From the sequence record NC_031927.1: DNA of 64,000 nt; one strand, given 5' to 3'. The stretch's first letter is position 1; each line of letters starts with the position of its first letter. Positions 17,134 through 54,584 of this stretch are shown here, piece after piece. Position numbers and translations under genes: made by a program. The notes beneath the pieces are model-generated. The model saw only the letters and a program-made list of their open reading frames with translations. It had not been told where the DNA came from and did no database searches.

Positions 17134-17934
17134 ATGTCTTTTTCATTCAACCATTTAGGTAATCACGGGCATTTGGGGAACCAGATGTTCCAATATGCTG
17201 CCCTAGTGGGCTTATCTATTAAGCACAATAGACCTTTTTGTATTCCCCACGAAGGTGTATTTGGGAAGCATTATTACACAGAACTCCGTAGTAATATCTA
17301 CGATGCTTTTGATATCAATCCTATCAAGGGTATTAGTTCTTATCCAACAGTAAATGAGCCAAGCTTTGAGTTTAGTCAGGCTTTCTTTGAGAACCCACCT
17401 ACCCAGAATATCAATCTATTAGGTTTTTATCAGAGTGAGAAGTGGTTTGCTCACGCATCAGATTTGGTCCGTAAGGAGTTTACTTTCAAGCAACAATACA
17501 GAGAGATTGCCGAAGAGATTGCCGAGGAGATGCGTAAGCATTTGAGTGGTGAAGTAATCTCACTTCACATCCGAAGGACTGACTATGTAAATAATGCTAA
17601 CCACGATTGTGTTGGTTTGGATTATTATGGAGAAGCATTGAAGCTTGTCCCAGAAGAATGTAAAGTAATCATCTTCACTGACGACCCAGAGTGGGCAAAG
17701 GCACAGGAACTATTCCCAGATGATAGGTTCTTTGTATCAGAAACCAATTGTCCATATATCGATATGTGCCTAATGACTTTATGTGATTATCATATTGTCG
17801 CTAATAGTAGTTACAGCTGGTGGGGTGCCTGGTTGTCTAATAGTAAAAAGGTAATTACTCCAAAGACTTGGTTTGGTCCTGGACTAAATCATAATACAAA
17901 GGACATTTATTGTGATGGATGGGTTATAGTATGA
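17134..17934 (+). CDS. GT11 (alpha-1,2-fucosyltransferase family) glycosyltransferase, copy 1
   Basis: LGNQMFQYA, LHIRRTDY, NSSYSWWGAWL. Confidence 0.9.
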   Translation: MSFSFNHLGNHGHLGNQMFQYAALVGLSIKHNRPFCIPHEGVFGKHYYTELRSNIYDAFDINPIKGISSYPTVNEPSFEFSQAFFENPPTQNINLLGFYQSEKWFAHASDLVRKEFTFKQQYREIAEEIAEEMRKHLSGEVISLHIRRTDYVNNANHDCVGLDYYGEALKLVPEECKVIIFTDDPEWAKAQELFPDDRFFVSETNCPYIDMCLMTLCDYHIVANSSYSWWGAWLSNSKKVITPKTWFGPGLNHNTKDIYCDGWVIV

Positions 17935-18143: not shown

Positions 18144-18217
18144 GCCTCAGTAGCTCAGTGGAATAGAGCATCGCTCTTCTAAAGCGTTGGTCGCTGGTTC
18201 GAATCCAGCCTGAGGCG
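18144..18217 (+). tRNA. tRNA-Arg(UCU)
   Basis: Acceptor gcctcag/ctgaggc; loop CT-TCT-AA; GTTCGAATC T-loop; CCA not encoded. Confidence 0.95.
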
Positions 18218-18243
18218 TCGTCCAATTACTAACATATATAACA

Positions 18244-18399
18244 ATGGGATTACTTTCAGAAAGCGATTACACTCACGCAATTCAAGCACTTGAATACTAC
18301 CTTGAAGTTTGGGGTAGTCAGTTGAGTGATGTTGAGTATATGGAAAAGGAAGCTCTTCTCCGTTGGCTCTACATCAGCAAATCAAAACTAAGTAGCTGA
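18244..18399 (+). CDS. Small hypothetical protein (51 aa, not in ORF track)
   Basis: MGLLSESDYTHAIQALEYY... open frame between tRNAs. Confidence 0.45.
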   Translation: MGLLSESDYTHAIQALEYYLEVWGSQLSDVEYMEKEALLRWLYISKSKLSS

Positions 18400-18457
18400 T
18401 TACACAAGACGATCATCCATATTTACGCTATACTATCCACATACACAACAAAGACAG

Positions 18458-18649
18458 ATGGCTAAGCAACTCCGTATGGATCTCATTGATGAGTATTACA
18501 AGCTATACCGTGAGCGGACTCTATGCCGTCACACCAAAGATTTTAGAGACAACTACGAAAAGATTAGTGAGCTGTGGGTAGATTTTTCAGAAGAAGAGCG
18601 TATCGCAATCAATATACGCTTCATCCAAGACAACTTGAATAAGTTCTAA
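18458..18649 (+). CDS. Small hypothetical protein
   Basis: 63 aa between tRNA genes. Confidence 0.55.
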   Translation: MAKQLRMDLIDEYYKLYRERTLCRHTKDFRDNYEKISELWVDFSEEERIAINIRFIQDNLNKF

Positions 18650-18678
18650 TCTTGTGATATAATACGGTCAACAGACCT

Positions 18679-18751
18679 GCTCCTTTAGCTCTCTGGTGAA
18701 AGCACTCCGCTCATAACGGAAGAAAGGTCAGTTCGATCCTGACAAGGAGCA
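18679..18751 (+). tRNA. tRNA-CAU (elongator Met or Ile2)
   Basis: Acceptor gctcctt/aaggagc (paired 1:72, so not initiator); loop CT-CAT-AA; GTTCGATC T-loop. Confidence 0.9.
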
Positions 18752-18780
18752 TTGACAATCATCACCTTCTCTGGTATGAT
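18752..18780 (+). promoter_or_regulatory. Sigma70-like promoter (TTGACA-N17-TATGAT) upstream of tRNA-Ala
   Basis: Perfect -35 and 17-nt spacer. Confidence 0.8.
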
Positions 18781-18792
18781 TGTTTCATCTTC

Positions 18793-18868
18793 GGGGAATT
18801 AGCTCAGTTGGTAGAGCGCCTGCTTTGCAAGCAGGATGTCAACGGTTCGAGTCCGTTATTCTCCACCA
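18793..18868 (+). tRNA. tRNA-Ala(UGC)
   Basis: GGGGAAT acceptor, loop TT-TGC-AA, encoded CCA. Confidence 0.97.
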
Positions 18869-18873
18869 ACCAT

Positions 18874-18946
18874 TGCTCTGTAATTCAATCGGTAGAATGC
18901 CAAACTGTTAATTTGGAGGTTGCAGGTTCGAGTCCTGCCGGAGCAG
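18874..18946 (+). tRNA. tRNA-Asn(GUU)
   Basis: Acceptor tgctctg/cggagca; anticodon arm ccaaa-CT-GTT-AA-tttgg; GTTCGAGTC. Confidence 0.93.
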
Positions 18947-34692: not shown

Positions 34693-34854
34693 ATGTCACG
34701 CTACGATCAAATTTTAAAAAATCTAAAAGAAGCAATCTCCAATCCCCATCTATACAATGAGGAAGAGATTCGTTTTATGAAGACACAGCTTCGCGAACTA
34801 ACAGAATCAAAGCAACAATTTCTAAGAGAAGATAAGAATGGATTTGGCTCTTAA
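34693..34854 (+). CDS. Conserved small cyanophage protein (53 aa, not in ORF track)
   Basis: LYNEEEIRFMKTQLREL...KNGFG. Confidence 0.65.
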   Translation: MSRYDQILKNLKEAISNPHLYNEEEIRFMKTQLRELTESKQQFLREDKNGFGS

Positions 34855-35275
34855 AATTGTAGGTGAAACTTGCCTTACTGAACCATCAATAGTAATTGAT
34901 GAAATTACTGACGATATTATCAATCTCTCCAACAAAATGAAAGAGAAGATGGTTCAGTGGGACGGTATAGGATTAGCTGCACCTCAAGTTGGACACAACA
35001 TCCGCCTTATTGTTATTCGTTTCAGCAGCGGTAAAATACAGGAAATGATTAATCCTAGGATTAGTTGGACTTCTGAAGTGCGAAAGAAAAGCCAAGAGGG
35101 ATGCCTAAGCATTCCAGGAGAAACTATTTGGGTTGAAAGACCATCTAAGGTTCGTGTGAAATTTCAGACTGCCGAAGGTGAGTTTAGATACTGGTGTCTC
35201 CATAAAATGGATGCCCGAGTATTCTTACACGAGTATGATCACCTTGAAGGTATTTTAATGACTGACCGACTATGA
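34838..35275 (+). CDS. def: Peptide deformylase
   Basis: GIGLAAPQVG, EGCLS, HEYDHLEG. Confidence 0.96.
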   Translation: MDLALKIVGETCLTEPSIVIDEITDDIINLSNKMKEKMVQWDGIGLAAPQVGHNIRLIVIRFSSGKIQEMINPRISWTSEVRKKSQEGCLSIPGETIWVERPSKVRVKFQTAEGEFRYWCLHKMDARVFLHEYDHLEGILMTDRL

Positions 35276-37124: not shown

Positions 37125-37149
37125 GCCCCCTTCGGAAAGGGGTTTTTTT
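37125..37149 (+). terminator. Intrinsic terminator after the structured RNA
   Basis: gcccccttcggaaagggg + T run. Confidence 0.7.
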
Positions 37150-37180
37150 ATGCTATAATATATAATGTATTATTTGTGTA

Positions 37181-38056
37181 ATGGTAATGTATCATGAACG
37201 TATGAAGTTACGAAAAGATGCTTATTCTAAAAAGTTAGACAATGTAACATCGAGGTGCTATTTTGCAAATGGATTTGCAACTAGGATTAAAAATATTGTA
37301 AGTTGCCACAGAATTGCAAATAACGTTCAAGTTTATTGGGATGCAAATTGTAAACCATTTTACTATAAAAAATTAAATGAATACTTCCCTGATCTAGTGG
37401 AAACCGATGAGTATGTCTCAAAGACATGGAGACAAGGATGGAGATTAGCCACTTTTCCTGGAGAAATTGGGGAAGGTTTTTCAAATAAAGACGCAATTTT
37501 TGAAGAGTTTGATAGTCCAATTGTTATCCCATCTCATGGAAAGGGTCGTTGTATTGATTATGAATATCATAGAATTCCCCAACCAATTATCGATGACTAT
37601 CTTAAAATATTCTCTGAGTTGAGAATTAAAGATTCTTTTCTTGAGACTGCGGATAAGTTTGCTAAGGAAAATTTTAATTCTGAAACTGTTTCTGTGCATA
37701 TTAGAAATTGGGTTGACTTTGCACCTAGAGGAAAAATGCACACCCTATCTCCCTTCATTGACTTGATGGTAGAGCATCCAACATCAAAGTTTTTTGTTTC
37801 TACGGATAGTCCCAATAATATCAAAATCCTAAAAGAAACGTTTGGTGATGATCGCATTATTAGCTATTGTGGAACAGATCCATCATTTGATGTCTTTATT
37901 GATTTACTTCTCTTATCGAAGAATCGGAATTTGATTGGTTCTGTAATGAGCACTTTTAGTGAAGTTGCTTGGTGGTTAGGTGGAGCTACGGCAAAGGTCA
38001 AAATTGCTTATGGTCCCAAGACAATGAAGTATATGTACCCAAAACATCACATTTAA
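37181..38056 (+). CDS. Fucosyltransferase-like GT-B glycosyltransferase (NodZ/GT23-like)
   Basis: NGFATRIKN, VSVHIR, FFVSTDS, DLLLLS...LIGSVMSTFSEVA. Confidence 0.7.
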   Translation: MVMYHERMKLRKDAYSKKLDNVTSRCYFANGFATRIKNIVSCHRIANNVQVYWDANCKPFYYKKLNEYFPDLVETDEYVSKTWRQGWRLATFPGEIGEGFSNKDAIFEEFDSPIVIPSHGKGRCIDYEYHRIPQPIIDDYLKIFSELRIKDSFLETADKFAKENFNSETVSVHIRNWVDFAPRGKMHTLSPFIDLMVEHPTSKFFVSTDSPNNIKILKETFGDDRIISYCGTDPSFDVFIDLLLLSKNRNLIGSVMSTFSEVAWWLGGATAKVKIAYGPKTMKYMYPKHHI

Positions 38057-38096
38057 ACCATTTGTGCTATAATATATTTGTAGCAATCCATTTGTA

Positions 38097-39098
38097 ATGA
38101 AAGTAGCACTTATTACTGGGATCACAGGGCAAGATGGATCTTACCTAGCTGAACTTCTCCTTCAGAAAGGATATACAGTTCACGGTATTATCCGTCGTGC
38201 TTCTATGATTAACACCCACAGAATTGACCATATCTTTGACCGCATCACTCTCCATTATGGAGACCTTACCGATGCTTTGAGTATCGTATCTATTATTAAA
38301 ACAGTTCAACCAGATGAAATATATAACCTAGGGGCTCAGAGTCACGTTAAGGTTTCATTTGATCAGCCTGAATACACAGCACAGACCGACGCATTGGGCA
38401 CTCTAAGGGTGCTAGAAGCCGTCCGTCTTCTTGGTATGGAATCATACGTAAGAATCTACCAAGCGAGCACCAGTGAGCTTTATGGGCTAGTTCAGGAGAC
38501 ACCCCAGAAAGAAACCACTCCAATGTATCCACGATCCCCTTATGGAGTTGCTAAACTATATGGGTTCTGGATCATCAAAAACTACAGGGAAAGCTATGAC
38601 ATACATGCCTCTAGCGGTATTCTATTCAATCACGAAAGCTCACGCAGAGGAGAGACGTTCGTCACACGCAAGATCGTCCGAGCCTTGTCCCGAATTAGTG
38701 TGGGACTCCAAAGTGATCTACAACTTGGAAACCTCAATGCCCGACGTGACTGGGGACACGCCAAAGACTACGTAGAGGCTATGTGGTTGATGCTTCAGCA
38801 AGAGAAGCCAGATGATTATGTGATCGCAACTGGTGAGCAGTATTCTGTAAAGGACTTTGTTAATGCTGCAGCACCATACTTTGGGTTCAATATTGAATGG
38901 AGAGGTGAAGGTCTTGATGAGTTTGGATTCTGTCTCAATACTGGTAGAACAGTTGTAAAAGTCAATCCTAAATATTTCAGACCCGCAGAAGTAGAAACTC
39001 TTCTCGGTGATCCCACTAAAGCAAAGGAAGTTCTTGGATGGACTCCTACTTATACATTTAATGAACTAGTTGAAGAGATGGTACTTAATGGACAATAA
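38097..39098 (+). CDS. gmd: GDP-mannose 4,6-dehydratase
   Basis: [59 protein letters not shown]. Confidence 0.98.
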
Positions 39099-40011
39099 TT
39101 CCACAGTTGCAATTTTTGGGTCTGGTGGTCTAGCTGGAGGAGCAATCACCAGACAGTTTATAAACAAAAGACATAAACTACTCTTACCTCGCAGTAAAGA
39201 TTTAGATTTACGAGAACAAGCTGATGTTCGTGCTTGGTTCAAAGCCAATAAAGTTGATTATGTAATCCTAGCTGCTGCCCTAGTCGGCGGCATTATGGCT
39301 AACAAGACTCGCAAAGCGGAGTTCTTACACGACAATCTAATGATGCAGTGTAATGTAATTGACTCTGCTTACTATTCAGGTGTTAAGAAGCTCCTATTCC
39401 TAGGAACATCTTGCATCTATCCTGCTGGACGCCAACACCCACTAAAAGAAAATGAACTCCTTACGGGGGCTCTTGAGCCTACTAACGACGCTTACGCCAT
39501 CGCAAAGATCGCAGGAATCAAACAATGTGACTTCTACAGGGAGCAATATGGATTTGATGCTATCTCTATTATGCCTCCTAATCTATATGGTCCTGGAGAC
39601 AATTTCCACGAGGGATCAGGTCACGTCCTCGCATCGTTGATGAACCGCTTCCACAACGCCAAGGTGGCTGGTGAAGCCACTGTAGCTTGCTGGGGTGACG
39701 GAACACCTATGAGAGAGTTTCTCTTCTCTGAAGACCTAGCAGAAGCCTGTGCGTTCTTTATGGATAACTACAGTGACTACGGTCACGTCAATGTTGGAAC
39801 TGGTGAAGACATCACCATCAAACACCTAGCAGAGAGTATTGCAAAGGTTATTGGTTTTGAAGGAGAGATCCTATGGGACACTTCAAAACCAAATGGAAAT
39901 CCTCGCAAATTACTTGACAGCACTGTGGCTAATGAGTTAGGATGGAAGCCCAAGACCAGTTTTGAAGATGGTCTACAGAAAACTTACAACTGGTATTTAA
40001 ACAATGTATGA
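39088..40011 (+). CDS. fcl: GDP-L-fucose synthase/ColC-type epimerase-reductase
   Basis: [51 protein letters not shown]. Confidence 0.93.
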
Positions 40012-41155
40012 TTGGAAATTAATGGATGATACGGTCACACTTCGTGATCGTATGAAGATGGCTAAGTTTGTTCTAACTACTAGCCGACTAACACAAGGAC
40101 CACAAGTTCGTAAATTTGAGGAGCATTGGAGTGACTGGCTTGGAGTTAAACATTCTCTTTTTGTTAGTAGTGGTAGTACTGCCAACAGTCTTTTGGTATC
40201 TGCTTGGAAAGATCTAAATGATATTCCAGATGGTGCAAAGGTTATTGTTCCTGCCTGCACTTGGGTGACTAACATTGCACCAATCATTCAAAACAATCTA
40301 ACCCCAGTATTTTGTGATATCAATCTAAAGGACTTTAGCTTTGATATTAGTTCTCTTCAGACTATTGCATGTGAGCATAAAGATATCCGGGCAATCTTCG
40401 TCACACACCTACTAGGTTTCCCTGCACGGGTAGAGGAGTTTCATAAGATCTTCCCTAACGCAGACATCCTAGAAGACGTTTGTGAGAGCCACGGTGCCGT
40501 TATTGAAGGTGGGACTATGGCTGGTACATATGATGTAGGAGGGACATTCAGCTTCTACTTTGGTCATCATATGACTACTGTTGAGGGTGGTATGGTATCC
40601 ACTAACAATAGTGATATGTATGACTTGATGCGTATGAAGCGCTCTCACGGTTTATCTCGTGAGTCGGTTCATTCTAAAGAGTATGCGAAGATGTATCCCG
40701 AGATCAATCCACAGTTCCTCTTTATGACTGATGGTTATAACTTCCGTAATAATGAGATTGGTGCTGTATTGGGTCAGTCTCAACTAAAGCGTTTGGATAA
40801 TATGATCGTCAAGCGTAATGATAATTATAAGACATACTTCGAGATTGTATCTCTATACTCCCATCTATTCCATGTTCCTGCTTACATTCCAAATCGTATT
40901 AGTAGCTTCTGCTTCCCTCTAATCTCTAGGGACAAAGCAACTCATCTAAGACTACAGGAGTTGTTGACTGAGTATCGTGTAGAGTATCGCCCAGTTGTAG
41001 GTGGAAACTTACTCAAGCAGCCTTTCTTATCTGCTTATCACGCAGACTGCCCTAACGCAGACATCCTCCACGACCGTGGATTGTATGTTGGAAACAGTCA
41101 CTTTGTTGGTATAAGCCACTTACTAATGCTTGAAGAAATTTTGGAGCAACTTTGA
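40004..41155 (+). CDS. colD: PLP/PMP-dependent DegT-family enzyme with His in place of the catalytic Lys: ColD-like GDP-4-keto-6-deoxymannose 3-dehydratase
   Basis: LEDVCESHGA...GTFSFYFGHHMTTVEGG; 383 aa; adjacent to gmd and fcl. Confidence 0.75.
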   Translation: MYDWKLMDDTVTLRDRMKMAKFVLTTSRLTQGPQVRKFEEHWSDWLGVKHSLFVSSGSTANSLLVSAWKDLNDIPDGAKVIVPACTWVTNIAPIIQNNLTPVFCDINLKDFSFDISSLQTIACEHKDIRAIFVTHLLGFPARVEEFHKIFPNADILEDVCESHGAVIEGGTMAGTYDVGGTFSFYFGHHMTTVEGGMVSTNNSDMYDLMRMKRSHGLSRESVHSKEYAKMYPEINPQFLFMTDGYNFRNNEIGAVLGQSQLKRLDNMIVKRNDNYKTYFEIVSLYSHLFHVPAYIPNRISSFCFPLISRDKATHLRLQELLTEYRVEYRPVVGGNLLKQPFLSAYHADCPNADILHDRGLYVGNSHFVGISHLLMLEEILEQL

Positions 41156-41156
41156 T

Positions 41157-41951
41157 ATGACTATTTCTTTTAATTATTTGGGTAACCTGGGACACTTGGG
41201 AAACCAAATGTTTCAGTATGCCGCATTGATGGGTCTTAGCTCCAAGTATAATAGAACCTTTTGTATTCCACATCCCGATACATTTTCAACTGCGAGTTAT
41301 CAAGAAAATAGAAGCAGTATCTATAGCGCCTTTGATATCAAACCTCCACATGTTGGGATGAGTAAATTCAACCCAGTTTCAGAGGCACACTTTCATTTTG
41401 ATAACAACTTATTTGAGAACCTTCCACCCCAAGATATTGATCTTCGTGGATACTTTCAATGTGAAAAGTGGTTTAAGCATATTGAAGATGATGTGAGAAA
41501 GGCATTCACATTCAAGCCCGAGTATATGGAAGTAGCTCAGTTGATGCGAGATCAGTTAGATGGTGAAGTAATTTCTCTTCATATTAGAAGAACTGATTAT
41601 ATTACCAACCCAAATCATTATTGTATGCATATGGGTTACTATTTGAAAGCATTAAAAGTTATGCCTTCTGAGCCAAAGGTAATCATTTTTAGTGATGATA
41701 CTGAATGGGCAAAGGATCAGAAAGAGTTTCCTGATGATAGGTTCCTTGTATCCGAGACAAATTGTCCATACACAGATATGGCTCTGATGACTTTATGCGA
41801 CTACCACATCAATGCAAACAGCTCCTTCTCCTGGTGGGGCTCTTGGCTATCTAACAGCAAGAAAGTAACAGCTCCAAGTGATTGGTTTTCTGGTCCACTA
41901 ACTAGTAATAACTTATCTGATATTTATTGTGATGGATGGGAAGTAATCTAA
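41157..41951 (+). CDS. GT11 glycosyltransferase, copy 2 (fucosyl- or colitosyltransferase)
   Basis: LGNQMFQYA, LHIRRTDY, NSSFSWWGSWL; ATG 41157. Confidence 0.9.
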   Translation: MTISFNYLGNLGHLGNQMFQYAALMGLSSKYNRTFCIPHPDTFSTASYQENRSSIYSAFDIKPPHVGMSKFNPVSEAHFHFDNNLFENLPPQDIDLRGYFQCEKWFKHIEDDVRKAFTFKPEYMEVAQLMRDQLDGEVISLHIRRTDYITNPNHYCMHMGYYLKALKVMPSEPKVIIFSDDTEWAKDQKEFPDDRFLVSETNCPYTDMALMTLCDYHINANSSFSWWGSWLSNSKKVTAPSDWFSGPLTSNNLSDIYCDGWEVI

Positions 41952-42721
41952 TGGGAAAAAATTTAGTATGTCAGATCTTTTTTGATAAAAAATTGATTAC
42001 TGATTATAAAGTTCATGAAAAAGACCAGACAAGAGGTGAGGTTGTAACATCTAAGCATTTAGATAATGAGTTGTTCCAACATTCTCAAATACTTGCTAAA
42101 AGATACGCAGAGCGTGTAGGTGCGGATTACATCCTATTTGATAAACCACATATCAATTTTTATAATCCATCTCAAGAAAGATTTAGATTGATGGAAGAAG
42201 ACCATTGGGCAGAGACATATGATAATATATTATATGTTGACTGTGATGCGTTTATCTACAACGAATGCCCCAATATCTTTGAGGAGTATCCACAAGAAAA
42301 TTTAAGGATTGCTAGGGATATGAACCCAGCTATTCCTAATCAGGAGAATGTAATTGTTAGTGAGGTTGGTCTTGATAAAGTGCGCCAATCATATTTCAAT
42401 GCTGGAATTCTATTGATGCACTCATCCACACTTAGGGAATTAAAAAAGGTCATCAAATATAAGGAAAGATTTTCTCTCTTACCTTATGGTGATCAGTCCG
42501 AGTTAAATTACTGCACATTGAAGTATGACATCCCCCATACAGTAATGGACCAAAGATTCAACTCATATGACAGAGATGCATTTATCGGTCATCTATACGG
42601 TACGCAAAAGTTTGATGGACTATTCCATAGTGCATATCACCTGAAGAAAGCTAAAGAGCAAGCACTAGGTATCAAACCGAAGAAAAAGAAGCTACCATTC
42701 ACAGTAAAAACTAATTATTAA
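41951..42721 (+). CDS. GT8-like glycosyltransferase
   Basis: LYVDCD (DxD), YFNAGILLM, GDQSELN. Confidence 0.75.
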   Translation: MGKNLVCQIFFDKKLITDYKVHEKDQTRGEVVTSKHLDNELFQHSQILAKRYAERVGADYILFDKPHINFYNPSQERFRLMEEDHWAETYDNILYVDCDAFIYNECPNIFEEYPQENLRIARDMNPAIPNQENVIVSEVGLDKVRQSYFNAGILLMHSSTLRELKKVIKYKERFSLLPYGDQSELNYCTLKYDIPHTVMDQRFNSYDRDAFIGHLYGTQKFDGLFHSAYHLKKAKEQALGIKPKKKKLPFTVKTNY

Positions 42722-42725
42722 ACCA

Positions 42726-43295
42726 ATGACTGTTGATGTAAACTATTGGAGTACTTTCTACTCATCAAATCACACTCTAGATTCCTCCAACTTCTGTAGG
42801 TTTGTATTAGAGTACTTTAAAAATCAGTCTTCACTACGCATCCTAGATGCTGGCTGTGGTAATGGTAGAGATAGCTATGCCCTATCCAAATTACACATAG
42901 TAACTGGTATAGATACTGCCGACTATGTTCCTGAGTCAACAGAGACTTGCTCATTTGAGACTGGAGATTTCTGCACACATGATAAAGATTCTTACGATAT
43001 TGTGTATTCTAGATTTACTCTACACTCAATTACAGATGAGCAACAGGTAGAATTCATCAAGTCTATTGTAAATGCTGGGACTTTCTTATGCATTGAGTGT
43101 AGAAGTGATGGAGACATTGATACTGTAAGGGAGCATGGTGATGACCACTATAGAAACTTTGTAAGCTTTGTTCGCCTTCAGAGTATATTGTTGGAGAATG
43201 GATTTATAGTGCATGTTGCTGAAGAAAGTAGGGGATTTGCACCATACAAAGCAGAAGATCCAGTTTGTGTACGATTCATTGCGGAGAAAAATTGA
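42726..43295 (+). CDS. Class I SAM-dependent methyltransferase
   Basis: ILDAGCGNGRDS, YDIVYSRFTLHSI. Confidence 0.9.
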   Translation: MTVDVNYWSTFYSSNHTLDSSNFCRFVLEYFKNQSSLRILDAGCGNGRDSYALSKLHIVTGIDTADYVPESTETCSFETGDFCTHDKDSYDIVYSRFTLHSITDEQQVEFIKSIVNAGTFLCIECRSDGDIDTVREHGDDHYRNFVSFVRLQSILLENGFIVHVAEESRGFAPYKAEDPVCVRFIAEKN

Positions 43296-43825
43296 TGGCA
43301 GGTTATCCTGAAAAAGCAGAAAAGCTAAACACCACACTACTCTGGACTCTCGATCTTCTTGAGACTAGAGGTATTGATAAGTGGTTTGTATCTTATGGTA
43401 CTTTATTGGGTTTGATTCGTGATGGATCATGTATTGATGGTGATGATGATGTAGACATCTGCATTGACAAAGATTGTTGGGATGATGTATATGATCCAAT
43501 CAAAAAATTGAATAGACTCAATGAGCAGTATGTAAAAGAGAACATTATCATCACCAAAAGAACTGCGACATACTCACAAGTAGATTTTTATTGCTGTGAT
43601 GTAAATGAGCAAGGTGACTTCAATGATACATGGGAAGATGTTATTTGGAGTAGATGCTATAATGAGTCTGACAAAATTCCAACCATTGAGTTTCAGGGAA
43701 GACATTTGAATGTTCCTCATAATGCAATTGAAAAACTTTCTAAGCGTTATGGTTCTACTTGGAATCAGAGAATCAAAAGAGGAACTGAAGCCGGAGATGG
43801 TTATCGTAAAATAAAAGTATTATGA
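43295..43825 (+). CDS. LicD-family phosphotransferase
   Basis: WFVSYGTLLGLIRDG..IDGDDDVDI; LSKRYGSTW. Confidence 0.8.
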   Translation: MAGYPEKAEKLNTTLLWTLDLLETRGIDKWFVSYGTLLGLIRDGSCIDGDDDVDICIDKDCWDDVYDPIKKLNRLNEQYVKENIIITKRTATYSQVDFYCCDVNEQGDFNDTWEDVIWSRCYNESDKIPTIEFQGRHLNVPHNAIEKLSKRYGSTWNQRIKRGTEAGDGYRKIKVL

Positions 43826-44640
43826 AAAATGAAGTTATGAGACACGACCTAAAAGACACTACATTTATTATACCTCTACGCATTGAGAGTGGAGACAGAA
43901 TGCGTAATGTAATTACTTCATTATGTTATATACTATCAAACTTTGATACTCATATCATTGTAAAGGAGGGTGATACCTCTTCTATATTTCTTGAGGATGT
44001 TCTTCCACAAGTAAAAGATTTCATGGAAGTAGATGAGATTCCTAATCTATTACATGTCTTTGAGGACACGAGTGCTTCTGAGTTCCATAGAACTAGGTAT
44101 CTTAATGAGATGACTCATATGGCTACAACAAAGGTTGTGGTTAATTATGATTGTGATATCATCCTTCCCGTGGAGTCCTACATAAAAGCACAGGCAATGA
44201 TTATTGATGGACCTTCTGATGTGGTCTATCCATATGGATTCGGTAACTATGCTAAAATGGTAACCGTAGATGATTCAATTGTCTCTGAATTCCTAACTGA
44301 AGGATTCAGTATTAATCTCCTAGAAAAAACTACAAAGCTAAACAATGCTCGTTTTGGTTTCTGTCAGTTCTTTGATAGAGAGGTTTACATCAGTGGTGGC
44401 GGGGAAAACGAAAAGTTCATTGCATATGCTCCTGAAGATGAAGAGAGGGCATTTAGATTTATTACTTTGGGATATAAAGTAGATCGTATTGATCAATTTG
44501 TATATCACCTAGAGCATTCAAGGACACCCAATTCGTGGTATAATAATCCTCATATGCAGAACAATTTTGCCTTATGGGAAGTTTTACAGAAAATGGACAA
44601 GCATCAACTAATTGAGCACTACAACTTATACAATGGATAA
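43822..44640 (+). CDS. Glycosyltransferase (GT2/GT7 galactosyltransferase-like)
   Basis: YDCD DxD, GGENEKFIAYAPEDEER, YHLEH. Confidence 0.75.
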   Translation: MKNEVMRHDLKDTTFIIPLRIESGDRMRNVITSLCYILSNFDTHIIVKEGDTSSIFLEDVLPQVKDFMEVDEIPNLLHVFEDTSASEFHRTRYLNEMTHMATTKVVVNYDCDIILPVESYIKAQAMIIDGPSDVVYPYGFGNYAKMVTVDDSIVSEFLTEGFSINLLEKTTKLNNARFGFCQFFDREVYISGGGENEKFIAYAPEDEERAFRFITLGYKVDRIDQFVYHLEHSRTPNSWYNNPHMQNNFALWEVLQKMDKHQLIEHYNLYNG

Positions 44641-45460
44641 AAACAAAGCAATCGGAAAACTACGAGGAATCCCTAGGATCTTCTACATAAATCTGGACGA
44701 CCATACAGAACGTCGTCAGTATATGGAAGACCAGTTTGAATACTGGGGTATTCCTGAGGACAACTATACGAGAGTTCCTGCCCACGATGGTAGGGGTGAT
44801 AATGATTTGGGTGATGTCCTAAAAGGTAAGTATCCAGAGCTAATGACTTCCAGTGAAGTTGGATGTACCGTATCACACTTAAAGGCACTTAAGTACTGGG
44901 TTGATAACTATCCAGAGGAAGAGTATCTTGTGGTTATGGAAGATGATTGTGACATTTCAACAGCTGGCTACTGGGGCTTTACATGGAATGATTTTGCGCG
45001 TAAAGTACCTTATCACTTTGATGTAATTCAACTTGCCGTCATCAATCCCATTGAGATTAATGTTAAGCTTCATCTGAGATTCGTCAATGACTTCTCAACT
45101 GCCTGCTATATTATCCGTAAGCATCACGCAGAGAAGTTAGTCAAACTTCATTGTCGTGGTGATAAGTATAAGCTTGACCAGAACGTTAAGCCTCGTGCTG
45201 TTGCTGATGACTTAATCTACAACTCTGGTTTATCCTTTGCTATCCCCCTGTTCTTATATAAGATTGCTTTGGGTTCTAGTATCCATGATATTCACGTGAA
45301 TACATTCCACAAAAGTAGTCATGATGGTCTATGGCAGTTCTGGAAAGAACAAGCACCAACCATCCCAGATTGGTCACAGTTCTTTGAGTATGATCCATAC
45401 TATGGGACACTTCCACCCAGCCTAGTTGCTAAACAAGCTATCGAAGACCATAATAAATAA
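44633..45460 (+). CDS. GT25-like glycosyltransferase
   Basis: FYINLDDHTERR, GCTVSH, VVMEDD; ATG 44633. Confidence 0.85.
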   Translation: MDKNKAIGKLRGIPRIFYINLDDHTERRQYMEDQFEYWGIPEDNYTRVPAHDGRGDNDLGDVLKGKYPELMTSSEVGCTVSHLKALKYWVDNYPEEEYLVVMEDDCDISTAGYWGFTWNDFARKVPYHFDVIQLAVINPIEINVKLHLRFVNDFSTACYIIRKHHAEKLVKLHCRGDKYKLDQNVKPRAVADDLIYNSGLSFAIPLFLYKIALGSSIHDIHVNTFHKSSHDGLWQFWKEQAPTIPDWSQFFEYDPYYGTLPPSLVAKQAIEDHNK

Positions 45461-45498: not shown

Positions 45499-49626
<4,128 letters not shown>

Positions 49627-49660: not shown

Positions 49661-51844
49661 ATGGCAGCCTTTAATTTTCCAGCAAACCCAAGTGTAGGGG
49701 ACCAAGTAACCAATGGAGGAGTTACTTATACTTGGGATGGTTACAAATGGAACACCACAACCGCACCATTTAGTGTAGGTGCTACTGGTGCTACGGGTCC
49801 ATTGGGGTTTGGTATCTATGCCTTTTGTAGGACTACATCTACTGGTGTCTTACTTCCAAATTATGGTAGTGGTATTTTAGGTGTAAACAGAGTATCAACG
49901 GGTGTTTATAGATATACACTTTCTCAACCATATAATAGCGCGGATTATATGGCTCAGGTTTCATTAGTATCCTCGGGTAATATTAATCCATCCGATTGGA
50001 ATGTTATTGTTGAAAATATTACACCAACAACATTTGATGTATTCACATATAGAGCAAACAATACTCCAATCAACCTAGAACACGCCGTTACTGTATATGG
50101 TGTAGATGGTCCTACAGGTACTGGTAGTGCCTATCAGTCTTGGTTGGAAGTTGGTAACTTTGGAACAGAACAGGATTTCATCAATTCACTACAAGGTCCT
50201 ACAGGAGGATCTGGTGGGCAAGGCAGCACTGGTGCTACTGGTCCCATTGGTCCCAATGGAGCCACTGGTCCCCAAGGTTTGGATGGAACATCCGTTGCTC
50301 TAAAAGGTACGGTTGATGATGCTAGTGACCTACCATCAATCCCAGGTACTGTTGAGGGTGATTTGTATGTTGTTCTTAATACTGGTGGTGGTTTTAATGC
50401 TGGTGATGGTGCTGTAAAAAATGACCTAACCACAGGCACTCTGGCTGATTGGAGTAATGTAGGTCCTCTACAAGGTCCTCAAGGAAATATCGGTCCAATA
50501 GGCGCAACTGGTCCCATAGGTTCTACTGGTCCCCAAGGTATTCCTTCTACTGATGGTGGCTTCTTTGTTCTTTCAGGTGAGAGAAGCGGACCTCCCGCTC
50601 TTAATCAATTCTTTGCGTGGGGTAATGGAGACAGTGCTGATAATGGAGTTCAAATCCAGGAAGGATGTTTCCTTGATTATGTTTCTATAACAGTAGAAAG
50701 ACCATTTGGAACTATTCCAGTTGAAGTTACTGCTTATGTAAATGGCTCTGCTACTATACTTAAAGCTATTGGTACCACTGGATCAAAAACATCAACATCA
50801 TCTGGTAGCCCTGTTGAGATTTTCCCAGGAGATTATGTAAATATTAGATGTTCTCAAACTGGTAACAACTCAACTGCTGGCGGAACTGTTGGTGGTTGTG
50901 TGGGTTCACTACTATTCTCTACCGCAGGTGCGCGTGGTGCTACTGGCGAAACAGGTCCTCCTGGTCCCCCTGATGGCGCTACTGGTGATACTGGTCCTGT
51001 AGGTCCTCTTGGTCCTGTTGGTCCTACTGGTCCTCTTGGTGCTACTGGTCCCGTTGGTCCTACTGGTATTGGTGCTCCTGGTCCTGATGGTCCCACTGGA
51101 GCTACTGGTCCTAATGGTCCTGCTGGTCCCGTTGGTACTGTTGTGTTGGGTACTGTTGCTGATATTGCTAGCCTGCCCCCATCTGCTAATGTTGGTGAAG
51201 GTTTTGTAGTAACTGCCGAAGCTAATGATGTATATGTTTGGAATGGTTCTTCCTGGAATAGTATTGGACCAGTTCAAGGTCCTATAGGTCCCGTTGGTCC
51301 TGCTGGTCCTCAAGGTGCTACTGGTATTAAAGAGCAGTCTTATATCAAGTCAACATTCCTAACCGAGTCAACTGTAAACTCATCAACAACATTCCAGTCA
51401 TTTAACATACTCAATGATTCTGCTATCCTTGAATCGGGTGGATATAGATATGCCGCAGAGATACCTGGAAGACAAGGTATTGGTGCTGGTGGTATTATTG
51501 TCCCAGAAACTGGGATCTATATGATTACTGCCTCACTATACTTCACAACACCTAGTGTGCAGAGAGCTAGTATTGGATTGAGATTTGCTATCGCAGAACT
51601 AGCAGATCCAGAAAATACAAATGCCGAGGGAGTTGCTTTACCAGAAACAGGAGCTATGGGATACATTAGATCTGGTTCAGGTCATAATGAAGCATCAGTC
51701 ACCCTTACAACTATCGCTAGCTTGGAAGTAATTCCTGGTGTTAGGGAAGATCAGGTTCAAATACAGTTGGCTAGATTGGCTTCGAGTGGTACTGTTAGTG
51801 TAGAAGCTAATCGTAGTATTATTACCATTACAAAAATTGCCTAA
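49661..51844 (+). CDS. Collagen-like fibre protein
   Basis: 727 aa; [19 protein letters not shown]-terminus; several Gly-Pro-X tracts; C-terminal domain homologous to that of the upstream gene. Confidence 0.85.
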
Positions 51845-53030: not shown

Positions 53031-54584
53031 ATGTCTCAAATTATATTCCCGAGTAACCCATCAGTTGGTGAATTTTATAATGTGGGTGATGTTACATATA
53101 AGTGGGATGGATCTAAATGGATCTCTACCAGCGTAGCCCCAGTAAATATTGGAGCAACTGGACCATCTGGTCCTGCTGGACCTACTGGAGCTACAGGATC
53201 AACTGTTGTTGATGGTAGTGATATCTCTGCTGGTGTAGTGACCGCAACAGAATTTGACGGTAATCTCAGTGGAAATGTCGCTGGCGATACTACTGGTATC
53301 CATAATGGGGATGTATATGCTAGAGATGGATCTAAAATTATATTAGAAACTGCTATTAATAATGGTGATACAGCACACTATACAGGCACAGTAACTGGCG
53401 ACGTAACTGGAGATACAACAGGAACACATTACGGAACCAATACCGGTCAGCAGCACGGAGATGTGTACACCAATGACGGTGGTCAGCAAGTCATAGATAC
53501 TGCTGCTATTCCATCTCCCCTATTCAAAGGTGATGCGGAAGGTTTAGATGGTGACCCAAATATACAAGTAACTAACCTAACAGTAGTTGGCTTAACTAAT
53601 GTTGGCGTTGTAACTGCTGCCGAAATAACTACAGATGATCTTAATGCTGATAGTGTAATTGCTGGGTTTGTTACATCAGTAAACTCATATACTAGTGGAA
53701 TCGCTACTGCTGGAAAGTTTTATGGTGATGGTTCAAACCTAACTGGAATAGCAACACAGTCTGGTGCTACTGGAGCCACTGGTCCCCAAGGTTCTCAAGG
53801 TGCTACTGGTATTCCTGGTCCTTTTGGTCCATATGGAATCACAGGAGCTACTGGTGCAACTGGTGTTGATGGTCCTGTTGGTTCTACTGGAGCCACAGGT
53901 GATCCTGGTTTAGCTGCTATGTGCTTCACATATAGGTATGATAGTGATACTGATACTAACGATGAGCCATTGAGTGGTCGCATCAGCTTCAACAATTCAA
54001 ACCCAGAAAATGCAACTGTTATTGCGATCAATGATACTAATGGAGATGCTGTTGATATCTCAAACTTCTTTGGTCTATTTGGTGCTGGATCTAAAGTTTA
54101 TATTCAAGAGGAGAGAGATGCTAGTAGCTTTATTCTTCTCACACTAAACGCAGGAGCTTCTGATCAAGGTGGTTGGTATAAGTTCACCAACTTTACAGTC
54201 AACATATCTGGTAATGTTACCTTTACTAACCTCAATAAGTTGATGGTTTGTGTTCAGCCACAAGGTCCAGCTGGTCCAACGGGCGCAACGGGTCTTACTG
54301 GAGCTGGAACTTCGGCAACATCATTCCAGTGGAACGATCATATCATCCCAGATTCAACGGAGTCTTATGATATAGGTTCAGCAGAATATAAAGTTCGCCA
54401 CCTATTTTTAAGTGATAACTCTGTTTATACTGATAGTGGGGAGGTTAGAGTTGGCTTCTCAACCCAAGTTGGAACATCAACCAAGATGCTAAAAGGAACA
54501 AAACTACAAGAGATTGTGGCTAATTCTGTTGACTTCGCAGACTTTAAAGTTAAGATGGCTTCGGAGGATTTTGGTTCCTTATGA
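53031..54584 (+). CDS. Fibre-like protein with short collagen tracts
   Basis: 517 aa; [18 protein letters not shown]; GATG tracts; [27 protein letters not shown]. Confidence 0.8.

Follow-up and report, generated by a model that had tools for sequence, protein, structure and literature searches.

A predicted ColD-type 3-dehydratase gene within the gmd-fcl-GT11 cassette of Synechococcus phage S-CAM7

Known colitose enzymes and the S-CAM7 locus

Colitose is a rare sugar whose known sources are the O-antigens of a small number of Gram-negative bacteria. One enzyme of its pathway is ColD (WbdK), described from E. coli O55/O111 and Yersinia pseudotuberculosis (PDB 2gms, 2r0t, 3b8x, 3gr9), whose gene adjoins gmd and an Fcl-family reductase. 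The expected final step belongs to ColC (WbdJ), the GDP-L-colitose synthase, which is itself an SDR of the Fcl family. E1 (RfbH/DdhC/AscC) and SpnQ share with the phage enzyme described here a His in place of Lys and the PMP-dependent C-3 deoxygenation that we predict for it. E1 differs from the phage enzyme in its [2Fe-2S] motif, its dependence on E3, its length of 434-466 aa, its CDP-/TDP-sugar substrates, and its rfbF/rfbG neighbours. The mechanistic background of PMP-dependent 3-dehydratases has been reviewed (PMC8987622).

Cyanophages carry gmd-fcl cassettes that have been described as cell-wall/LPS modification genes (PMC9602691). The GDP-fucose cassettes of P-SSM2, S-SKS1, S-SCSM1, and DSL-LC03 (gmd-fcl with or without GT11) share their gmd/Fcl lineages and GT11 family with S-CAM7 and lie in a comparable glycosyltransferase cluster but, unlike S-CAM7, have no colD-type gene. 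Our literature searches returned no paper that connects colitose with cyanophages or with a pathway encoded by any phage and no colitose report for marine Synechococcus or cyanophage virions, and we know of no such report for either.

We analysed a 64,000-nt window of NC_031927.1, from the marine cyanobacterial virus Synechococcus phage S-CAM7. An earlier note on this DNA had placed a gmd, an fcl-type reductase, a DegT-family gene, and a GT11 gene contiguously at 38097-41951, and the ORF list agrees: the four genes run head to tail on the + strand. The first, gmd (38097..39098), encodes a GDP-mannose 4,6-dehydratase, which makes GDP-4-keto-6-deoxy-D-mannose, and scores 539.7 bits against TIGR01472 (equivalog cut-off 415) and 492.6 bits against PF16363. 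It is followed by an Fcl-type SDR of the GDP-L-fucose synthase family, an epimerase/4-reductase (39088..40011; the GenBank start is the ATG at 39088, and the frame can also be read from a TTG at 39070). The DegT-family gene (40022..41155, alternative ATG at 40004) comes next, and the GT11 glycosyltransferase gene of the alpha-1,2-fucosyl/colitosyltransferase family (41157..41951, with a TTG at 41130 also open) completes the set. The module is an otherwise ordinary fucose cassette of the cyanophage type, gmd-fcl-GT11, with an inserted colD-type gene, and what it adds to is an already known colitose pathway.

GenBank names the DegT gene "putative CDP-4-keto-6-deoxy-D-glucose-3-dehydrase," which has the wrong nucleotide, and RefSeq and PHROGs call it "aminotransferase." The note had expected automated annotation to read fucose or perosamine synthesis; this holds for the RefSeq and PHROGs labels and for the GenBank "GDP-L-fucose synthetase," but the DegT gene was already a "3-dehydrase," albeit a CDP-linked one, in GenBank.

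Identity of the DegT-family protein

The DegT protein matches PF01041 (DegT_DnrJ_EryC1) with 192.7 bits and contains the peptide FSFYFGHHMTTVEGG, the first His of which is encoded by the CAT codon at 40565..40567 (+ strand). This predicted catalytic His stands in the place of the Schiff-base Lys; numbering from the ATG at 40004 makes it residue 188, and numbering from the GenBank start at 40022 makes it residue 182. It aligns with His188 of ColD, the position at which the PDB mutants 3b8x (H188N) and 2r0t (H188K) depart from wild type, and Per and PseC have Lys in this column. The Lys-to-His swap proposed earlier is therefore borne out at both the codon and the column, and the motif used for comparison (FSFFGN-K-TITTGEGG) is identical to that of E. 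coli O157 perosamine synthase. Because the His is invariant across 36 homologues, it is not a chance motif. The TxEGG motif, like the His/Lys column, agrees with ColD. The columns matching ColD R219, N248, E329, and R331, which we take to be ligand-binding residues in ColD, are invariant in the phage clade, and the dN/dS of the gene against four viral homologues (0.09-0.10) indicates purifying selection.

Structure and phylogeny place the protein in the same way. A PDB sequence search returned ColD at 172.7 bits, E1 at 117, and perosamine synthase at 83. The AlphaFold (AF2) model has a pLDDT of 94.6, and the first 12 Foldseek ranks are all ColD chains (TMq 0.86-0.92). In a maximum likelihood tree including ColD, E1, and Lys-type transaminases, a comparison of the kind that the note had proposed, the phage protein and E. 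coli ColD form one clade (support 98/95) that excludes E1 (a separate clade, 100/100) and stands apart from the Lys-type outgroup (100/98). Length also fits: as the note had argued, 383 aa from the first ATG (377 aa in the deposited CDS) is nearer to the 388 aa of ColD than to the 434-466 aa of three E1/RfbH proteins. Within the ColD-type group, the phage protein belongs to its own mostly viral, marine subclade. It differs from characterised ColD in its sequence (32% identity), its virus-encoded origin, its Fcl partner, and a locus with no wzx, wzy, or O-antigen context.

An aminotransferase yielding a GDP-4-amino-4,6-dideoxy sugar such as perosamine would account for the membership in Pfam DegT_DnrJ_EryC1 and in phrog_3139 ("aminotransferase"), and the His-type SpnQ can transaminate under some conditions, namely without its reductase (PMC8987622). 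Wild-type ColD, however, shows no transaminase activity under those conditions (PMC8987622), all 36 homologues have exchanged the Schiff-base Lys for His, and the tree puts the phage protein outside the Lys-type outgroup; on the His column and the tree, we reject this reading as improbable. The name in the depositor's record and in the JGI annotation (a label of GenBank, IMG, and KEGG style) implies instead an E1-type CDP-4-keto-6-deoxy-D-glucose 3-dehydrase serving a CDP-linked pathway of the abequose/paratose/tyvelose type, and the best NCBIfam match is indeed RfbH (NF011936), although at 176 bits it falls far under the cut-off of 423. The E1 [2Fe-2S] motif is C-X57-C-X-C-X7-C, with reference cysteines at -27, +31, +33, and +41 from the His. 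The phage protein has no Cys between -28 and +115; its lack of the last three E1 cysteines is shared with ColD, and it also lacks an 8-aa insert carried by the E1 references and is some 60-80 aa shorter than E1. True RfbH loci have rfbF and rfbG as neighbours; the phage gene and its relatives neighbour gmd and fcl, never rfbF, rfbG, or E3, and neither annotation nor Pfam domains revealed an rfbF-type or rfbG gene in the 64-kb window. A "cytidylyltransferase" in the window was considered as a supplier of CDP-glucose and set aside, since it belongs to PF01467 and is not RfbF. Motif, length, phylogeny, and context together rule against the GenBank label and leave it with hardly any credibility. 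As a separate matter, an E1-like enzyme does occur in another cyanophage group (S-B05, S-H68, and relatives).

We therefore assign the DegT protein, on its sequence, as a predicted ColD-type PMP-dependent GDP-4-keto-6-deoxy-D-mannose 3-dehydratase, neither an aminotransferase nor an E1, a reading of the note that clade, missing Fe-S cysteines, and gmd linkage all support. Its family, clade, and GDP linkage are observed, and 3-dehydratase activity is predicted. The nature of the substrate was judged by synteny alone. Relatives occur on 445 IMG/VR contigs; among the best 80 of these 445 loci, gmd lies within a few kb in every case (80/80) and an Fcl-type gene is near in about 66. Most bacterial and archaeal colD-type loci, from at least 10 phyla, also have gmd and/or an fcl-like gene adjacent. 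The DegT protein is accordingly predicted to act on the Gmd product, a GDP-sugar. Two isolated cyanophage lineages, S-CAM7 and ACG-2014f, carry the gene, and in these and many uncultured viruses the insertion point of colD is either the fcl/GT11 junction or the gmd/fcl junction. A GTDB scan with very specific peptide patterns found 29 loci, none of them cyanobacterial, from which absence from the hosts does not follow.

Reductase, transferases, and the sugar donor

The note had expected Gmd, ColD, and ColC. The first two are represented by gmd and a ColD-type enzyme, but the third enzyme is not orthologous to ColC. Its identity is 48% to E. coli Fcl (301 bits) and 40% to ColC (223 bits), and its score against the Fcl equivalog NF047922 is 421.7, below the cut-off of 500. 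In the tree it groups with E. coli Fcl and with the Fcls of colD-less phages, on the Fcl side of a ColC/Fcl split supported at 96/83; ColC and the Sulfitobacter partner enzyme form their own clade (100/99-100). The catalytic T/C/Y/K/H (107/109/136/140/179 in E. coli Fcl numbering) are kept. Fcl and ColC have the SDR Tyr/Lys and the epimerase pair Cys109/His179 in common, so these residues do not discriminate between them. We also considered a separate clade for colD-partnered Fcls and discarded it, as the Fcls of the colD-less S-SKS1, P-SSM2, S-SCSM1, and DSL-LC03 interleave with that of S-CAM7 and the label requires 5-7 changes on the tree. By sequence, then, the reductase is probably an ordinary Fcl-type GDP-fucose synthase, and GDP-fucose is probably made alongside any GDP-colitose.

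The GT11 enzyme is a clear family member (PF01531, 88 bits against a gathering score of 23.9), and a second paralogue of the same viral clade lies at 17185..17934 (+; PF01531, 72.6 bits). WbgN, the alpha-1,2-colitosyltransferase of E. coli O55:H7, uses a GDP-beta-L-deoxyhexose donor and is also a GT11, but it has 27% identity to the phage enzyme and falls in a different clade. We tried to read the donor from phylogeny, which was uninformative as GT11s from phages with and without colD are intermixed in the tree. GDP-Col and GDP-Fuc can each serve as donor for WbgN and for human FUT2 (PMC11987014); because known GT11s accept either, the GT11 sequence does not decide between the two donors. PDB sequence searches with the GT11 and GT25 proteins gave nothing useful.

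We propose that S-CAM7 encodes a self-contained three-enzyme branch from host GDP-mannose to GDP-L-colitose, followed by transfer to a glycan, and put the probability of this at roughly two in three. Gmd would supply GDP-4-keto-6-deoxy-D-mannose from host GDP-mannose. In the DegT protein, His182 (His188 in ColD numbering) would act as catalytic acid/base, and removal of the 3-OH would give GDP-4-keto-3,6-dideoxy-D-mannose. Such an enzyme would be free of Fe-S and regenerate PMP from glutamate, and therefore need no E3 reductase. The single Fcl-type epimerase/reductase would then yield GDP-L-colitose (3-deoxy-L-fucose). As the reductase is not a ColC orthologue, this last step is drawn from chemistry and synteny. 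Acting directly on the Gmd product, the Fcl-type enzyme would form GDP-L-fucose too, which makes a mixture of Fuc and Col donors likely.

The 3-dehydratase could also be real and the end product something other than colitose: Fcl might make GDP-fucose only, with the 4-keto-3,6-dideoxy intermediate passing to another enzyme or staying a minor side product, or another 3,6-dideoxyhexose stereoisomer might result. This would fit an Fcl-type reductase, interleaved with those of the four colD-less phages named above, and a cluster in which a methyltransferase and several enzymes of uncharacterised function are encoded as well. That Fcl accepts the 3-deoxy intermediate is an assumption, which counts against the colitose reading, as does the phage subclade being a branch of its own at 32% identity to characterised ColD. 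Competition from Fcl for the Gmd product could reduce colitose to a minor share. Against such an outcome, most loci have one reductase per triad, so that colD would otherwise be a dead end, and purifying selection on colD is strong. Cys109 and His179, the residues for epimerization, are kept; as the 3-deoxy substrate no longer has a stereocentre at C3, Fcl chemistry should lead to the L-xylo product, colitose. On balance we consider a non-colitose product unlikely, though it retains some weight.

Glycan cluster and significance

Upstream of the cassette, a terminator-like hairpin and T-run (37127-37142) followed by an extended -10, TGCTATAATAT, at 37151-37161 (together 37127..37161, +) likely mark the start of a glycan-gene transcription unit. 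The window has 3 copies of this 11-mer, where 0.09 would be expected; one of them, at 38065-38075, is the TG-extended -10 of a sigma-70-like promoter (38046..38075, +) 22 nt upstream of the gmd ATG. Between these two -10 elements lies a 289-aa ORF (37187..38056, +; phrog_32718) with no Pfam match. BLASTP aligns it weakly with the C-terminal half of the GT11 protein (E=0.001, 26% over 151 aa), in a region that takes in the SxHIR and SxFSxxxWW motifs, and it may belong, as a remote member, to the fucosyltransferase superfamily.

Downstream on the + strand follow a GT8-like glycosyltransferase (41951..42721; PF01501, a weak 21.5 bits, under the cut-off) and a SAM-dependent methyltransferase (42726..43295; PF13649, PF13489, PF13847), for which the domain matches lend no support to the GenBank name "adenylylsulfate kinase." The next protein (43295..43825) has a short match to LicD, a phosphotransferase family (PF04991, 28 bits; NF045866, 48.5 bits). 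A probable GT-A glycosyltransferase (43822..44640; phrog_1721 "galactosyl transferase," E=4e-6; faint PF02709) and a GT25 glycosyltransferase (44723..45460, with a longer ORF from the TTG at 44612; PF01755, 46 bits for the long form; phrog_2835) close the cluster. Directly downstream is a 1375-aa collagen-repeat "tail fiber" gene (45499..49626, +), which we treat as context and as encoding a possible acceptor. The glycan cluster lacks the late-promoter motif TATAAATA, and a single late-promoter-like NATAAATA stands before the tail-fibre gene, at 45452, which is weak evidence on timing. The set of downstream glycosyltransferases varies between related phages.

One or both GT11s, the downstream glycosyltransferases, the methyltransferase, and the LicD-like protein would use these donors to assemble a glycan inside the infected cell, in its cytoplasm. 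The acceptor could be a lipid-linked surface glycan of the host, amounting to cell-surface remodelling, or virion proteins. No flippase, polymerase, or ligase gene is part of the cluster, whose last gene, GT25, directly precedes the collagen-repeat fibre gene. GT25 also includes collagen galactosyltransferases, and GT11 enzymes cap beta-Gal; Col/Fuc-alpha1,2-Gal caps might therefore be built on the fibre. That the donors glycosylate the virion and not host LPS is a tentative idea to which we give rather low odds. If true, it would be the first virus-made 3,6-dideoxyhexose glycoprotein, and the variable downstream glycosyltransferases would diversify virion surface glycans.

A virus-encoded 3,6-dideoxyhexose route is absent from the literature we searched. 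With relatives on 445 IMG/VR contigs, gmd nearby in all of the best 80, and two isolated cyanophage lineages that carry it, the module is not a one-off. If it is active, the database names for this subfamily, "aminotransferase" or "CDP-…E1," are systematically wrong. The locus also raises the question of whether an ordinary Fcl can replace ColC. A natural pair suited to answering it is S-SKS1 (gmd-fcl) and contig L005 (gmd-colD-fcl), whose Fcls are about 0.12 changes per column apart on the tree. S-CAM7 and its host can be cultured, which makes the prediction directly testable. If active, the module would mean that phages can reach a rarer sugar by adding a single gene to a host-like fucose cassette, altering the surface of the infected cell or the virion, with consequences for adsorption, superinfection, and grazing.

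Organization of the glycan cluster

The window comes from Synechococcus phage S-CAM7, a T4-like cyanomyovirus, and matches KU686212.1 at 100% identity (record coordinate = window coordinate + 124000). The genes for Gmd, an Fcl-type SDR, a DegT-family protein, and a GT11 are four contiguous ORFs on the plus strand. This bore out in every detail what the earlier note had described, including the peptide FSFYFGHHMTTVEGG, whose first His is encoded by the CAT codon at 40565-40567. The gmd gene (38097-39098, +) passes the equivalog cut-off of TIGR01472 (539.7 versus 415), and the Fcl-type gene (39088-40011, +) scores below that of the Fcl equivalog model (421.7 versus 500). The DegT-family gene (40022-41155, +) matches PF01041 with 192.7 bits; the 383-aa length stated in the earlier note corresponds to a start at the in-frame ATG at 40004. 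The GT11 gene (41157-41951, +) matches PF01531 with 88 bits.

Downstream of the GT11 lie a GT8-like gene, a methyltransferase gene, a LicD-like gene, a probable GT-A gene, a GT25 gene, and then a collagen-repeat tail-fibre gene; no flippase, polymerase, or ligase is annotated in the cluster. The ORF at 42726-43295 (+) is labeled "adenylylsulfate kinase" in GenBank but matched only SAM-methyltransferase domains (PF13649, PF13489, PF13847), so that label is probably a misannotation. Directly upstream of gmd, a 289-aa ORF (37187-38056, +) has no Pfam match and belongs to phrog_32718, of unknown function. Weak similarity links it to the C-terminal half of the GT11 (E = 0.001), HIR and FS..WW motifs included, and it may encode a distant enzyme of the fucosyltransferase superfamily. 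The window also contains a peptide deformylase gene (34838-35275) and four clustered tRNA genes (for Arg, Met, Ala, and Asn; 18144-18946), which are ordinary cyanomyovirus features. In related phages (L002, L127), the left edge of the glycan island is conserved and is marked by the deformylase gene.

The TG-extended -10 element TGCTATAATAT stands 22 nt before gmd, and another copy precedes ORF 37187, just past a terminator-like hairpin (37127-37142). This exact 11-mer occurs three times in the window on the plus strand (37151, 38065, 52468; 0.09 expected), with two of the three copies ahead of ORF 37187 and gmd, which open the glycan cluster. The motif NATAAATA is found upstream of the tail-fibre gene. 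These elements hint, weakly, that the glycan genes may be read from host-type promoters, apart from the late fibre gene.

A ColD-type dehydratase and its predicted GDP-sugar substrate

Replacement of the Schiff-base Lys by His is the defining mark of the 3-dehydratases, among which E1 and SpnQ bind a [2Fe-2S] cluster and require a reductase, while ColD has no cluster and uses glutamate to regenerate PMP (PMC8987622). E. coli O157 Per carries exactly the Lys-type motif that the earlier note used for comparison. As references we used ColD, ColC, WbgN, Gmd, and Fcl from E. coli O55:H7, Per from O157, one PseC, and, for E1, three PGAP-named RfbH proteins, two of which are flanked by rfbF and rfbG.

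In a sequence search of the PDB, the DegT protein matched four ColD entries best (172.7 bits, E 1e-49), followed by E1 (117 bits) and by aminotransferases at no more than 93 bits (perosamine synthase, 83 bits). The ColD mutant entries H188N and H188K deviate from wild type precisely where ColD aligns with the phage His; the H188K change turns ColD to GDP-perosamine formation. When the AlphaFold model of the phage protein (pLDDT 94.6) was compared with the PDB by Foldseek, ColD chains took all of the top twelve places (TMq up to 0.92), with E1 and GDP-perosamine synthase coming after them. In our alignment, the E1 proteins have cysteines at positions -27, +31, +33, and +41 relative to the catalytic His, which is the published [2Fe-2S] spacing C-X57-C-X-C-X7-C, plus an 8-residue insert; of this motif, the phage protein and ColD keep just the Cys at -27/-28. 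In a maximum-likelihood tree rooted with Lys-type enzymes, E1 forms one clade (100/100), and its sister clade (98/95) unites E. coli ColD, two plasmid homologs, and a 40-row clade (100/99) that includes the phage protein. The proposed ColD-type assignment, as opposed to E1, thus agrees with tree, cysteines, and structure matches alike, and the protein falls outside the aminotransferases of the root. RfbH is the best NCBIfam match, at 176 bits against a cut-off of 423, and was rejected as an identity. The gene has a dN/dS of 0.09-0.10 against four viral homologs.

GenBank and IMG label such proteins "CDP-…E1," which would imply a CDP-sugar. Genomic context argues that this is the wrong nucleotide. 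We found 29 loci with relatives of the DegT protein (30-58% identity) in GTDB genomes of Bacteroidota, Pseudomonadota, Thermodesulfobacteriota, Actinomycetota, Planctomycetota, Acidobacteriota, Chloroflexota, Saccharimonadota, and Myxococcota, and of one archaeon; where flanks were available, gmd and/or an Fcl-like gene was usually the immediate neighbor. The plasmid homologs of Sulfitobacter and Haladaptatus sit in gmd-reductase-DegT operons. IMG/VR holds a relative on 445 contigs, and among the best 80 of these, gmd lies within a few kb in all 80, an Fcl-type gene in ~66, and a GT11 gene in ~37. No homolog of rfbF, rfbG, or E3 was found in the window, where the annotated "cytidylyltransferase" is a PF01467 protein. 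Based on these neighbors and on the lack of rfbF, rfbG, and E3 in the window, the predicted substrate is the Gmd product, as for ColD.

Among isolated phages, a close homolog of the DegT protein occurs only in S-CAM7 and ACG-2014f. A related 341-kb cyanophage-like contig shares the gmd-fcl-colD-GT11 core and continues with another set of glycosyltransferase and sulfotransferase genes, and the downstream genes of ACG-2014f differ too; the tailoring genes vary from one genome to the next around a core that stays the same. In the uncultured 642-kb phage LR756502.1 (L129:5001-6131), a His-type, ColD-like DegT gene (motif SSFSFFVAHHMSTIEGGM) comes immediately after an Fcl-type gene, with no gmd within the 5-kb flanks. 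A different His-type dehydratase is present in another cyanophage group, made up of Synechococcus phage S-B05 (L130:4842-6137), S-B43, S-H68, RB11-B, and RN05-S. Its 431 aa and the CYC…C cysteine cluster past the catalytic His mark it as E1/SpnQ-like; genes for an RmlC-like epimerase, SDRs, an O-methyltransferase, and a GT11 lie around it. This looks like a second, Fe-S-dependent route of 3-deoxygenation in cyanophages. The E1-like enzyme is a feature of the S-B05 group, whereas S-CAM7 carries the ColD type.

An Fcl-type reductase, not a ColC ortholog

The earlier note saw an fcl-type reductase and set it in a route whose last enzyme is ColC, an Fcl homolog; the phage enzyme is Fcl-type and not ColC. 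With E. coli Fcl it shares 48% identity (301 bits), and with ColC 40% (223 bits); the two references are 39% identical to each other. In the reductase trees, ColC groups with the Sulfitobacter partner in a separate clade and the phage enzyme lies on the Fcl side (96/83), ruling out a ColC ortholog. Tyr136, Lys140, and His179 are kept in all compared Fcl-type enzymes, and Cys109 in almost all.

We added Fcls from gmd-fcl cyanophages classed as colD-less by their absence from the DegT tblastn lists (P-SSM2, S-SKS1, S-SCSM1, DSL-LC03), and these mixed among the colD-partnered Fcls. Carrying colD required 5-7 changes on this tree, with clustering no greater than in shuffles, so colD has repeatedly been gained by, or lost from, a standard fucose cassette. 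On the tree, the Fcls of S-SKS1 (L122) and contig L005 are only ~0.12 changes per column apart, yet L005 has colD between gmd and fcl where S-SKS1 has none, making the two a naturally occurring pair with and without colD. Binning had assigned L005 to a Crocinitomicaceae MAG, and it may be a mis-binned phage contig.

Since colD would otherwise be useless, the single reductase must presumably process the ColD product, and by its family it should also convert the Gmd product to GDP-fucose. Fcl-type epimerization and 4-reduction of the 3-deoxy intermediate, in which C3 is no longer a stereocenter, would yield the L-xylo configuration of colitose.

Glycosyl transfer and the place of the proposed pathway among phages

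The GT11 shares 27% identity with the colitosyltransferase WbgN. Its clade is viral and mixes GT11s from phages with and without colD. WbgN and human FUT2 accept both GDP-Col and GDP-Fuc, and donor availability sets what is transferred (PMC11987014); judged by sequence, the phage GT11 could use either donor. A second paralog (17185-17934, +) lies 20 kb from the cluster, in the same small viral clade, and tandem GT11 pairs occur on some IMG/VR contigs (L052, L074); having two paralogs might mean two donors or two acceptors. The acceptor could be either a host lipid-linked glycan or a virion protein. The GT25 gene (44723-45460) is directly upstream of the gene for the 1375-aa collagen-repeat "tail fiber" (45499-49626), and two further collagen-repeat ORFs follow (49661-51844 and ~53082-54584). 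This arrangement makes collagen-like virion fibres a possible target of glycosylation by the cluster.

In E. coli O55:H7 CB9615 (L004:13701-15787), RefSeq (PGAP) names the experimentally characterized ColD "DegT/DnrJ/EryC1/StrS family aminotransferase," ColC "GDP-L-fucose synthase family protein," and WbgN "alpha-1,2-fucosyltransferase." No ColD or ColC model was among the NCBIfam matches, which explains the mislabeled phage genes.

GDP-fucose cassettes have already been described in cyanophages (PMC9602691); our full-text literature search found neither colitose in connection with cyanophages nor any phage-encoded colitose pathway. With the reductase corrected, the colitose reading is supported. 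The enzymes come from families already known, and the chemistry predicted for them follows the textbook route to colitose. What is new is a virus as the host of these genes, a divergent colD subclade with relatives on 445 viral contigs of IMG/VR, and, as judged from sequence, an Fcl-type enzyme in place of ColC.
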